Below, one piece after another: positions 4,556 to 63,709 of a DNA stretch of 64,000 nt. This stretch comes from Bugula neritina (Eukaryota > Animalia > Bryozoa). Where the stretch lies: contig OZ037772.1 in NCBI GenBank assembly GCA_964035545.1, forward strand, positions 12,894,818 through 12,958,817, written 5' to 3'. The position numbers and the translations under genes were made by a program. The notes beneath the pieces were generated by a model. The model was not told where the DNA came from and did not search any database. It saw nothing but the letters and a program-made list of their open reading frames with translations. Within the stretch, counting starts at the first letter, position 1; each line of letters starts with the position of its first letter.

Positions 4556-7500
4556 TTAGTAGCCGAAGCAGACGGGGCCCATTTCAAAGCCGAACTTCTG
4601 GTTAGACTGACCAAAGTCTTTGATTTCTAGATCTACTATAGGGAGCTGGTGGACCTTACTGGTTGATATCTGGAATATGGTGAGTCCACTGGATGGGCGG
4701 TCCTAAACGATACAACAACCAATGAGATAAGGGAAAGGGTGGTCATTAACCAATAGCATGATAGAGAAGATTTCAAACTCAACAATGATGAGGAATAATT
4801 TTAGAAATTACTTACAGCGCAGCCATCCATTAGGACAAACTTTCTCTTCAGAGCTTTGCCACCAAATTCAAACTCATTGTGTCCGAGTAGCGAGACGGAG
4901 TTGTCTAACCTATTAGTTCTGGAGTCTCGGTATGCTACGGTGTTTGAGCAGAAATAGGTCAACTTCTGTGTGGCTTTCGAGTACATGAGACGCAGGAATG
5001 AGATTTGGGACTCGGCTGCATAGTCAAACTGTAGAAAACAACGTGTTGATAGTATGTGTTGATAGAATGTGTTGAGAATATGTGTTGATAGAATGTGTTG
5101 ATAGAATGTGTTGAGAGTATGTGTTGATAGAATGCGTTGATAGTATGTGTTGATAGTATGTGTTGAGAACTCAAGAGATGTATGTAACAATTCAACAGTC
5201 AAGTTGAAAAGCTGTTTAGAAGCAGTGAATAAGTGAGAGAGTGAGTGAATGAGTGAGAGAGTGAGTAAACGAAAAAATGAATACAAATAAGCAAACAAAC
5301 AGGATAATAACACAGCGAGGTAATAGCTGACTGTGAATCATATATTGAATAGTAACTACATTATCCAGTTAACAATAGTGATTTAATTATGAGTAAAGTG
5401 TGAGGTGAATGAGATGGCTAATGTTATACTAACCTGACAGGGATTAGGTGAATGAGATGGCTAATGTTATACTAACCTGACAAGGACTAGGTGAATGAGA
5501 TAGGTAATGTTATACTAACCTGACAAGGACTAGGTGAATGAGATAGGTAATGTTATACTAACCTGACAAGGATTAGGTGAATGAGACAGCTAATGTTATA
5601 CTAACCTGGAATCCTCCCTTCAGAGAAGAGAACCAGTGCGATTTCCCAGAACTTGGTTTCTGCCAGGTCCTTGGTAGAACCATGTCATGACCCTTCTTAG
5701 GGTGAACACAGGTCTCTCCCTCTCCAGTCATGTTACACCACACTTGGATTGCGTCATTTATAACTCCGAGATTAGGGTCGATCCAGTACCACCCTAAACA
5801 GATCAAATAGCAGACGTTAGAGATCAAATAGCAGGCAGCATCAGCTCAACAAAATGGAGAAGAAGTCATTGTTAGTTACTCAGCAACTTCTATACTTAGT
5901 TTACCTATTAGTAGCTAGTAGCTAGTAGCTAGTAGCTAGTAGCTAGTAGCTAGTAGCTAGTAGCTAGTAGCTACTAGCTACTAGCTAGTAGCTAGTAGTA
6001 TTCTAGTAGTATTCTGAAGCAAATATACAGACAGAGCAGTTCAAATGTCAACTGCAAATAGTCAATAAATGCGGCAGACGTGAGGAGATACAGACGTGAG
6101 GAGATACAGACGTGAGGAGAGACAGACGTGAGGAGATACAGACGTGAGGAGATACAGACGTGAGGAGATACAGACGTGAGGAGATACAGACGTGAGGAGA
6201 GACAGATGTGAGAAGATACAGACGTGAGGAAATACAGAGGTGAGGAGATACAGACGTGAGAAGATACAGACGTGAGAAGATACAGATGTGAGGAGATACA
6301 GACGTGAGAAGATACAGATGTGAGGAGATACAGACAAGAGGAGATACAGACGTGAGGAGATGCAGACGTGAGGAGATACAGATGTGAGGAGATACAGACG
6401 TGAGAAGATACAGACAAGAAGAGATACAGATGTGAGGAGATACAGATGTGAGGAGATACAGACGTGAGGAGATACAGACAAGAAGAGATACAGATGTGAG
6501 GAGATACAGACGTGAGAAGATACAGACAAGAAGAGATAGACGTGAGGAGATACAGACGTGAGAAGATACAGACAAGAAGAGATACAGACGTGAGGAGATA
6601 CAGACGTGAGGAGATGCAGACAAGAAGAGATACAGACGTGAGGAGATACAGACGTGAGGAGATACAGACGTGAGGAGATACAGACGTGAGGAGATACAGA
6701 CGTGAGGAGATACAGACGTGAGGAGATACAGACGTGAGGAGATACAGACGTGAGGAGATACAGACGTGAGGAGATACAGACGTGAGAAGATACAGGCGTG
6801 TCACGTACCGTCCTTGAACTCTGGGTGAGCCAAGTACAAGTCTTTACAAGATCTGGCTGGTGATTCTCTTCCTCCATTTGGATACCGTACGTCATCGAGC
6901 TCTGTCTTCAGGTCGTCAATCTCATTGAAGATCTTTTCAATCACATGACCTAGAAAGTGTCATGACAGAATGGAGAGCTTTACTCATAAAAAGGGAGCTA
7001 GAATCTGTGACATTACTAAATGTGACACTTCTACAGAGCAAAAATGTGGGCGTGGCTTACCTAGAGTGGGCGTGGCTTACCTAGAGTGGGCGTGGCTTAC
7101 CTAGAGTGGGTGAAGGTGGCATATCAAACACATCTTGCTGAGGTTCGTCTGCGACCATCTGTTGTCTGACGGAACGTCTCTTGCGACTCAGAGCTCTCTG
7201 GGCGAAGTCACTCGGGACGGGACTGGCGATACCGGCATCAACACCAGGAGCTCCCTACAGGCAGAGTGAGAGTGAAGAGTCACACAGGAAACTGACTATG
7301 TCATCAACATTGAATACAAGCAGTGGTTAGACTGTACTTACAGCGGGTCCTGGCAAACCAGGTGGTCCATCTCTACCAGGATCTCCCTTAGAACCAGCAG
7401 TACCAGGTGGTCCAGCTGGACCCATAGGTCCATCTGGTCCAGGAATTCCAGGAGCACCAGGTGGTCCTAAATTTATTTCAACAAGACTTGTAGGTTTCAT

Positions 7501-62800: not shown

Positions 62801-63709
62801 CATTCTGTTTGTTAGTCTATGTATTGTTTTAGACATCAATGTGTATTATTTTAGACATCAATGTGTATTGTTTTAGACATCAATGAATGTGAGGGTAACT
62901 TCACATGTCCACTCAACTCTCTCTGCAAAAACTCACCAGGAACCTATGACTGCCCGGATTGTATGAAGGGGTACAGATGGGACCTCAATAAGACTTCCTG
63001 TTATGGTAGGAACTCAAGTTATACATATGATATGATACACTGCAAGCATAGCGCTAAACCAGGGTCTCTTACGGAATAGAAGTATAGTGTCTAGTAGAAC
63101 AGACCTGTACAACTAGTCCTGTGTCTTTCTAGATCACATCACTTTGTGTCACATCACCCGGTGTGTCACGTGACAGGGTACCATGTCACATTATATTCAC
63201 ACAGTACTGTATAAAGTGTAGTAGTTATACCGTTTTACCTCACCCTGTTTATAGATATAAATGAGTGTGATGAAGGCATTGATACTTGTCCACCAAACAG
63301 CGTGTGTAACAATACTATTGGCTCATTCAAATGTCCCAGATGTAACGATGGATATGATTGGACAGATAGCAACCAGACAGCCTGTGAAGGTACTTGTAAC
63401 TAAAGTGTAGCAGTTTTGTCCAGGTTATAAACTTAGAAATATTAACTTTAAATTTTCATTTATTTCACAGGAATTTGAAGGGTGAAACTCTCCTAATTTA
63501 CAACTATTGCTAAACCCACAGCTCATTGTCAGCACACTGCAAGCTGTAGTAATGTTGTCTTCTTCTATTTACAGATGTGGATGAATGTGCTAATGATACT
63601 CACACCTGTCCAGAGAACAGCGTGTGTAACAATACTATTGGTTCCTTTGAGTGTCCAGTGTGTGAGGATGGATATGAGTGGACAGATAGCAACCAGACAG
63701 CCTGTCAAG
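50853..63709 (+). CDS. Secreted hemicentin/VWA7-type VWA protein followed by at least 8 EGF/cbEGF repeats; continues beyond the window
   Basis: Signal peptide, then SLGIVFDTSNSMADEL (MIDAS DxSxS), FILVPYNTP, DCPEVTIGAIEEALK, SYIFVFTDASASDY, VTFILTGDCG, YQQIASASSGEIF, DPQPGTWRL and LKGIDKNGNPFERIS. Phase-1 EGF exons start at about 60043, 60528, 61258, 61685, 62269, 62877, 63254 and 63575, mostly D(I/V)(N/D)EC. Last visible donor at 63710. Confidence 0.88.
51666..52007 (+). repeat. 21-bp repeat reiterating exon end plus donor (ACTCCTA|GTATGT), about 16 copies
   Basis: True donor at 51679. Confidence 0.92.
52140..54668. repeat. Intronic 22-bp AT-rich satellite (TATTATTATATTACTATGTGTA)n, about 115 copies
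   Basis: Directly visible; source of the YIIILLCVYYY ORFs. Confidence 0.98.
56826..57301 (+). repeat. 34-bp repeat reiterating acceptor plus exon start (TTGTATTGCCAG|GGGTAGTAACTTATACTGT), about 13 copies
   Basis: True acceptor AG at 57281-57282. Confidence 0.93.
57552..59216. repeat. Intronic 16-bp satellite (TATCTCACCTCTGTTA)n, about 100 copies
   Basis: Directly visible; a related 14-bp unit (TATCTCACCTACAA) occurs at 61445-61612. Confidence 0.98.
59458..60059 (+). repeat. 40-bp repeat reiterating acceptor plus first 17 exon bases; unit runs GTATTG...TGTGTAG, about 14 copies
   Basis: True acceptor AG at 60041-60042. Confidence 0.95.
60187..60385 (+). repeat. Degenerate repeat of the donor GTGAGTAT
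   Basis: True donor at 60187; about ten further GTGAGT copies follow. Confidence 0.85.
60679..61230. repeat. Intronic 18-bp repeat (GTTGCTATGGTTACTCT[A/G])n, about 30 copies
   Basis: Directly visible between two EGF exons. Confidence 0.95.
62818..62886 (+). repeat. 22-bp triplication of acceptor plus exon start (TATTGTTTTAG|ACATCAATG)
   Basis: AG at 62832, 62854 and the true site 62876. Confidence 0.92.

Follow-up and report, generated by a model that had tools for sequence, protein, structure and literature searches.

In a 64-kb stretch of the genome of the bryozoan Bugula neritina (64,000 nucleotides, positions 12,894,818-12,958,817 of contig OZ037772.1 in the 216 Mb, 321-contig assembly GCA_964035545.1; hereafter, the window), many introns carry tandem repeats whose unit incorporates the gene's own splice junction together with neighboring exon bases. 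The pattern is real and striking, but it is of an already named kind, met here in a new phylum, and repeat density and intron size account for most of its frequency. The reading we prefer, with a probability of about 0.7, is that these locus-private minisatellites are identical in nature to the “mirage” minisatellites of amphioxus and that they are a geometric by-product of dense repeats in very short introns.

The original prediction, made from the letters of the window, listed 16 such arrays and claimed that their units hold an authentic donor or acceptor plus exon bases. All 16 were printed in register, in gene orientation, and compared with curated gene models and with five RNA-confirmed junctions of the uricase gene. 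The claim was borne out for most of them. The authentic junction and 1-23 exon bases clearly lie within the repeat unit in 13 of the 16 arrays, nine of which are donor arrays (5404, 7046, 27713, 31712, 35045, 43712, 44455, 51666 and 60187) and four acceptor arrays (37940, 43322, 59458 and 62818). Two more, 25528 and 56826, include a junction whose exact site is uncertain, and one, 11670, bears only a degenerate resemblance to its junction. Array copies are identical in register over 20-43 nt, exon bases included, which is beyond chance resemblance. Three or four further arrays or units were found (42808, 50982, 56623 and possibly a duplication at 9223/9241 in the collagen gene). In the modeled genes, nine arrays span donors and five span acceptors, so that both boundary types are duplicated, and about one quarter of modeled introns (14 of 55) carry a junction-spanning array.

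The arrays of the minus strand are given below. Arrays are named by the position under which they were first listed, and a vertical bar marks the splice point.

Array 5404: 5403..5608, minus strand, donor array of the collagen C-propeptide intron; 43-mer, 4.8 copies; exon end 5606, 3 exon bases in the unit; four identical decoy donors (CAG|GTTAGT) follow the used site.
Array 7046: 7046..7110, minus strand, collagen donor array; 20-mer, 3.2 copies; exon end 7101, 10 exon bases in the unit; two identical decoys.
Array 11670: 11657..11723, minus strand, collagen intron array; 29-mer, 2.3 copies, beginning 16 nt past the donor according to Tandem Repeats Finder (TRF; exon end 11740); a 9-nt CTACAGGT-type likeness to the true junction is all that remains.
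Array 25528: 25526..25784, minus strand, next to an FN3 exon; 25-mer, 10.4 copies, holding GTGGTGAGT donors, judged by frame reasoning; the authentic donor lies in copy 1 (25785|25784, weak) or in copy 2 (25757|25756, strong), both equally possible, and the array begins at the first intron base if the weak copy-1 donor is used.
Array 27713: 27714..27932, minus strand, donor array following an FN3 exon (...TDYEVTVSASVDDTLT|GTAAGT); unit of 36-42 nt, 5.6 copies; exon end 27922, 11 exon bases.
Array 31712: 31713..31786, minus strand, donor array of a SOD-like exon; 27-mer, 2.7 copies; exon end 31770 (AGT|GTAAGT), 17 exon bases.
Array 35045: 35038..35146, minus strand, MDP1 donor array; 39-mer, 2.8 copies; exon end 35140, 7 exon bases; two decoys slightly stronger than the real site.
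Array 37940: 37940..38249, minus strand, PPP1R11 acceptor array; 42-mer, ca. 7 copies; exon start 37949, ca. 10 exon bases in the unit; five in-register decoy acceptors (CAG|GTTGC) upstream of the used one.

The arrays of the plus strand, three of them absent from the earlier list, are as follows.

Array 42808: 42808..43040, plus strand, uricase intron 3; 16-mer, 14.8 copies, beginning at the first intron base (donor 42807|42808); absent from the earlier list.
Array 43322: 43325..43535, plus strand, uricase acceptor array; 39-mer, 5.4 copies; 3 exon bases in the unit.
Array 43712: 43698..44038, plus strand, uricase donor array; 24-mer, 14.2 copies; at least 3 exon bases in the unit.
Array 44455: 44455..44652, plus strand, uricase donor array; unit of ca. 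36 nt; 23 exon bases in the unit.
Array 50982: 50982..51089, plus strand, intron 1 of the VWA/EGF gene; (GTCT)n, 28 copies, beginning at the donor G, the first intron base; absent from the earlier list.
Array 51666: 51665..52007, plus strand, VWA/EGF donor array; 21-mer, 16.5 copies; exon end 51678, 14 exon bases in the unit; the intron measures ca. 56 nt once repeats are collapsed.
Unit 56623: 56623..56680, plus strand, donor unit of 31 nt (G|GTAACACGAG...), 1.5 copies; absent from the earlier list.
Array 56826: 56833..57301, plus strand, acceptor array; 34-mer, 13.7 copies; exon start 57283 in the preferred model, with ca. 19 exon bases in the unit; the reading frame also allows another donor/acceptor pair.
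Array 59458: 59456..60059, plus strand, acceptor array; 40-mer, ca. 14-15 copies; exon start 60043, 17 exon bases in the unit; each unit links an acceptor and a donor, both strong, through 12 in-frame bases (IEQC), making it a potential microexon cassette.
Array 60187: 60186..60396, plus strand, donor array; 13-mer GTGAGTATTGACT, ca. 14 loose copies; exon end 60186, 1 exon base in the unit.
Array 62818: 62820..62885, plus strand, acceptor array before an EGF_CA exon; 22-mer, 3 copies; exon start 62877, 9 exon bases in the unit.

Two further observations concern the collagen gene (minus strand). At the exon end at 9221-9259, an 18-nt duplication creates two same-phase donors 18 nt apart, 9241 and 9223, and use of 9223 in place of 9241 would add exactly two Gly-X-Y triplets. 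In a collagen intron, a 22-mer repeated 40 times (12394-13282) begins 5 nt past the donor and carries a perfect donor consensus (AAG|GTAAGT) on the non-gene strand.

According to the original prediction, one splice site has to be picked among near-identical ones. This proved correct. With position weight matrices derived from 22 secure junctions, internal copies score equal to the used site, and up to 13-14 equal sites are on offer. Array 43712 contains 13 decoy donors, ten of which are identical to the used site, while 13 decoys are present in array 51666 and ten decoy donors in array 60187. On the acceptor side, 13 identical decoys were counted in array 59458, and array 43322 holds four, of which three slightly outscore the real site.

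Evidence on the choice actually made comes from a 628-nt spliced uricase contig of run X7, an rRNA- and poly(A)-depleted 2016 library from another individual; the public runs that hold this DNA include a 2016 B. neritina symbiont metagenome study, and none of the runs recorded as RNA was found to contain the window. The contig joins 43299 to 43533, the last, exon-proximal copy of the acceptor array, and 43719 to 44354, the first, exon-proximal copy of the donor array. At the third array, the contig stops at 44477, the first and proximal donor. No joints at internal copies are listed for this contig, a kind of sequence in which rare isoforms stay hidden. The exon-proximal copy is the dominant choice at the three uricase arrays. 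Exon definition had also been named, beside stepwise re-splicing and clean-up by nonsense-mediated decay, as a possible way of picking the site, and use of the proximal copy where RNA exists is what exon definition predicts. Exon definition would probably account for the choice, since proximity to the exon is what the first donor and the last acceptor have in common, and a first-come or intron-definition rule would not predict the acceptors. Any product of mis-splicing would carry a frameshift, which would expose it to nonsense-mediated decay.

The intact and identical decoys could also be taken to mean that the arrays are functional, with decoys acting as landing pads for U1/U2AF, as recursive-splicing steps or as microexon cassettes, and with copy number tuning splicing or expression. 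Some units do form complete GT...AG mini-introns (array 5404, 43 nt) or acceptor-12 nt-donor cassettes (array 59458), and array positions are conserved between two diverged genomes. However, concerted evolution would make the copies of any minisatellite identical, haplotypes and assemblies vary freely in copy number, and the units share nothing between loci. Moreover, the RNA contig contains no internal-copy joint, and the introns are shorter than 3 kb, unlike those known to be recursively spliced. We consider a functional role of the arrays very improbable.

The arrays arose in place, as had been claimed: their units are locus-private, and their copy number differs between assemblies and haplotypes. 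Comparison of 16 units revealed no mutual relation beyond the splice consensus, and a search of the 216-Mb genome with the uricase arrays returned only the locus itself, barring a common ACTC microsatellite and look-alikes of 70-79%. An origin from a dispersed element, introner-like or transposon, was rejected, given that the units are unrelated and that nothing close to the uricase arrays was found at other places in the genome.

As a comparison genome, we used the independent 2020 PacBio draft GCA_010799875.2, obtained from another individual, in which the orthologous 20 kb were found at 85-95% identity. The arrays recur there, at the junctions where they lie in the window, and their copy numbers differ.

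43325, plus strand, acceptor array: 5.4 copies in the window, 8.4 in the 2020 assembly.
43698, plus strand, donor array: 14.2 copies in the window, 11.4 in the 2020 assembly.
51665, plus strand, donor array: 16.5 copies in the window, 22.4 in the 2020 assembly.
56623, plus strand, donor unit: 1.5 copies in the window, 8.5 in the 2020 assembly.
56833, plus strand, acceptor array: 13.7 copies in the window, about 6 in the 2020 assembly.
59456, plus strand, acceptor array: about 14-15 copies of a 40-mer in the window, 7 copies of a 47-mer in the 2020 assembly.

Array turnover is rapid, and differences are also seen within one individual. Run X1 behaves as the diploid source individual (half-depth alternative bases), and a half-depth DNA joint in this run reveals that the other haplotype skips 44487-44692 (206 nt), most of array 44455, which is thus heterozygous. 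These data bear on whether the arrays could have been produced by misassembly or could resemble splice sites by chance. Assemblies are prone to errors in tandem repeats, and array 11670 is barely more than a motif likeness. Nevertheless, the same arrays recur in an independent assembly of another individual, contigs of four public runs span the region, RNA junctions fall exactly at proximal copies, and the in-register identity takes in exon bases over 20-43 nt. We therefore give this explanation practically no credence. Assembly artefacts, which the original prediction had named as grounds for abandoning it, are largely ruled out by the independent assembly and the heterozygous array.

Several other features differ between the assemblies or individuals. 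Two huge intronic arrays, 52123-54668 (22-mer, 116 copies) and 57552-59216 (16-mer, 105 copies), have only ca. 9 and ca. 32 copies in the 2020 assembly, due either to real contraction or to collapse in that assembly. Conversely, an array of 11.6 copies of a 34-mer downstream of a D8C gene in the 2020 assembly (reverse complement 11035-11429), near window position 48.0 kb, has no counterpart in the window. A coding 30-mer repeat in a single-exon D8C gene (47336-47443) has 3.6 copies, compared to 2.5 in the 2020 assembly (its reverse complement 10470-10543), a difference that matches protein lengths of 304 aa and 294 aa. At 88% likeness, the 2016 DNA run X3 yielded no contig over 44900-45699 and the RNA run X7 yielded none from 44700, so the uricase 3' region of these individuals is either very diverged or absent.

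How many junction-spanning arrays should be expected depends on the repeats, the genes and their introns. TRF analysis of the window returned 135 rows, which reduce to 87 distinct arrays that occupy 17.1 kb, or 26.7% of the window. Genes were identified from open frames and Pfam matches.

ca. 4.6-18 kb, minus strand: fibrillar collagen gene (COLFI, Collagen).
ca. 21-32 kb, minus strand: FN3/SOD-like gene.
minus strand: MDP1 (Acid_PPase).
minus strand: PPP1R11 (PPI_Ypi1).
42.0-45.0 kb, plus strand: urate oxidase (uricase), with the C-terminus SKL.
minus strand: two single-exon D8C paralogs.
50.9 kb to the window end, plus strand: VWA and EGF_CA gene.

The product of a single-exon open reading frame at 46871-47782 shares 93% identity with a Bugula neritina protein. 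Gene models were curated under phase and no-stop constraints (constrained snapping, domain logic) and contain 27 exons for collagen, 18 for the VWA/EGF gene, 8 for uricase, 5 for MDP1 and 2 for PPP1R11, with 55 introns in total. A home-made dynamic-programming gene finder was rejected as the source of final models and served for drafts only; it over-called tiny exons in arrays, such as the 12-nt “IEQC” exons that it strung together in array 59458. The SOD/FN3 fusion gene (21.2-32.2 kb) lacks a confident model and was excluded from the statistics, its three arrays being judged locally. In the collagen gene, a probable GC-AG intron at 10110/10109 (minus strand, AAAG|GCATGT) is required for the Gly-X-Y register into the exon starting at 9744.

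There are 44 arrays in the 55 modeled introns, where they account for 55% of the bases; the corresponding shares are 2% for exons and 10% for putative intergenic regions. With every array reduced to one unit, the introns measure 56-553 nt (median 185). As a null model, we let a founding unit of length L land uniformly, with junction overlap tolerated, so that the probability of spanning is P = 2(L-1)/(2(L-1)+I0-L-1), where I0 is the collapsed intron length, and summed it over arrays. The model predicts 9.9 junction-spanning arrays, compared to 14 of 44 observed, each in a different intron (P=0.08); under the stricter definition of at least 3 exon bases, 11 were observed and 8.4 expected (P=0.19). 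Under this model, junction repeats would largely be a matter of geometry, of short introns with many arrays, and no junction-targeting process would be needed, because uniform placement of units of 13-43 nt already comes this close to the observed count. The original prediction that the genome amplifies or tolerates junction-spanning repeats is thus upheld as to tolerance and not as to a special amplifying process; the enrichment check that it called for was run on this one window and gave a marginal excess.

The placement of the remaining arrays is informative as well. Ten non-spanning arrays begin 1-16 nt past the donor and two lie within 16 nt of the acceptor, and among the 44 arrays in 55 introns, none of the non-spanning ones ends less than 12 nt from the acceptor. 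This spacing fits protection of the branch point and polypyrimidine tract, with only ca. 6 nt protected at the donor. Core splice signals are never separated from their exon. Taken with the low share of exon bases in arrays, the distances to donors and acceptors suggest a situation in which only the core signals are protected.

Several observations weigh against a purely geometric origin. The spanning count somewhat exceeds expectation. Array density per collapsed kb is 4.2 in introns and 0.85 in putative intergenic regions, a ca. five-fold excess (P=2e-8) that a purely uniform mutational process does not predict; the intergenic set was guessed (1-4500, 18700-21200, 33400-34600, 36300-37800, 38700-41950, 45100-46800, 47850-48850 and 49800-50800). 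Arrays are also skewed toward the donor end of introns: their median relative position is 0.27 vs. 0.51 (P=0.005), and 21 of 44 fall in the first intron quarter, where 13.1 are expected (P=0.009). In addition, the test leaves aside the incompletely modeled SOD/FN3 gene, and the RNA covers three arrays in one gene through assembled contigs of a poly(A)-depleted library from another individual, so that minor use of decoys is possible.

The density and the skew are what one would expect if a transcription- or splicing-coupled process made duplications preferentially in introns, especially at or just downstream of 5' splice sites, in which case the arrays would be the signature of this process and not a by-product. 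The nine donor-spanning arrays against five acceptor-spanning ones, and the ten arrays shortly past donors against two close to acceptors, point in the same direction, as does a comparison with the rest of the genome: in fifteen random 10-kb samples, 3% of bases lie in such arrays vs. more than 20% in the window, making this region unusually rich. (An annotation-free scan of the samples for junction arrays recovered only 5 of ca. 14 known window cases and gives no genome-wide rate.) However, the window lies ca. 0.4 Mb from the end of a 13.35-Mb contig, and subtelomeric minisatellite richness could explain the density without a link to splicing; the abundance of arrays may be a regional feature, possibly a subtelomeric one or one linked to gene density. 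Protection of the branch point and polypyrimidine tract accounts for the deficit on the acceptor side, the intergenic set is only guessed, the strict spanning excess is not significant, and the density and skew tests are exploratory, being based on one window and 44 arrays. A coupled process is, in our opinion, unlikely. We are equally doubtful of the broader proposition that introns in Bugula are hotspots of minisatellite birth with a 5' splice site bias. Such hotspots would point to a coupled process, for example, at U1-bound or paused sites, which in this lineage, and convergently in amphioxus, would chiefly drive the growth of introns and would keep supplying new splice sites, microexons and intron positions.

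We thus return to the geometric by-product as the best explanation. Tandem duplication in place would create an array, which slippage or unequal exchange would then grow and shrink. With units of 13-43 nt in collapsed introns of 56-553 nt, geometry alone would often make a duplication straddle or abut an exon boundary. Straddling a junction would be harmless because the exon-touching copy stays in use: the spliceosome would keep the first donor or the last acceptor, and the rest would become intron.

The Bugula arrays offer a natural experiment in splice-site choice, with up to 13 identical decoys beside the used site. The repeat-collapsed intron length supplies a simple null model, under which most junction repeats can be accounted for without a special mechanism. 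This null does not explain the five-fold intron excess of arrays or their donor-end skew, which, if genome-wide, would bear on intron growth and on the origin of new splice sites. There are practical consequences, too: gene predictors are expected to mis-call exons in such arrays, as seen with our home-made finder, and copy-number polymorphism to confound short-read mapping in this species.

Among known systems, introner-like elements are recognized by many dispersed near-identical copies; no such copies were found here, the units being unrelated and the uricase arrays confined to a single locus. A likeness to recursive splicing is seen in units in which an acceptor is directly followed by a donor: CAG|GTTAGT in array 5404, CAG|GTTGC in array 37940 and TAG|GTATTG in array 59458. 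Recursive splicing takes place at juxtaposed AG|GT ratchet sites and leaves stepwise intermediates in nascent RNA. Known recursively spliced introns are very long, whereas the Bugula introns measure 0.15-2.6 kb, and a single splicing step at the proximal site suffices to account for the mature RNA.

In human genes, alternatively spliced introns derived from variable number tandem repeats (VNTRs) have reportedly been described (Zhuo and colleagues, in PNAS in 2007). Splicing-associated tandem repeats (spl-TRs) are also known in human (PMC10078293). The human VNTR and spl-TR cases resemble the Bugula arrays in that intronic arrays carry splice signals in their units and are able to influence or create splice choices. 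They were found via alternative splicing, whereas here no alternative use was seen and the arrays copy a constitutive junction.

In the Rogers model, introns are gained by tandem duplication of an AGGT-containing segment (PMC3265369, PMC4974935, PMC2891723). As in the Bugula arrays, a splice signal is duplicated, the extra copy is spliced out and the coding sequence is unchanged. The Bugula duplications, in contrast, extend existing introns, in which 42 nt or more of unique sequence is kept after collapse (I0 at least 56 nt). No new intron was found at an intron-less position, in a comparison that included no ortholog devoid of the intron: all arrays lie in introns in which unique sequence remains after collapse, and the same introns are present in the 2020 assembly.

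The Bugula genome paper (PMC7576161) makes no mention of an intron or satellite feature, and the literature searched contained no study that surveyed such arrays genome-wide, whatever the taxon. The closest match is provided by the “mirage” minisatellites of amphioxus, reported in Adh3, troponin C, globins BflGb6/9 and PGBD5 (PMC3087553, PMC3902484, citing Canestro et al. 2002, NAR 30:2871). Regular splicing of mirages stays intact though the copies carry AG/GT, haplotype lengths differ (PMC3087553), the feature is shared by PGBD5 and troponin C (PMC3902484), and somatic instability is reported for Adh3. The defining features examined are all present in the Bugula arrays: a head-to-tail unit over an exon-intron boundary, at both 5' and 3' boundaries, regular splicing (in three arrays, for the dominant isoform) and length instability. 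Mirages and Bugula arrays share units of 10-160 bp, undisturbed splicing of AG/GT-bearing copies, copy-number variation between haplotypes and locus-specific sequence. They differ in that mirages belong to a cephalochordate, whereas Bugula, a bryozoan, is a lophotrochozoan; in that the local density is far higher in Bugula, where 14 of 55 modeled introns are affected, with up to 16 copies; and in that a quantitative null model here attributes most cases to short introns with dense arrays. The mirage phenomenon is thereby extended beyond a few genes of amphioxus to another, distant phylum, where it occurs at high density.

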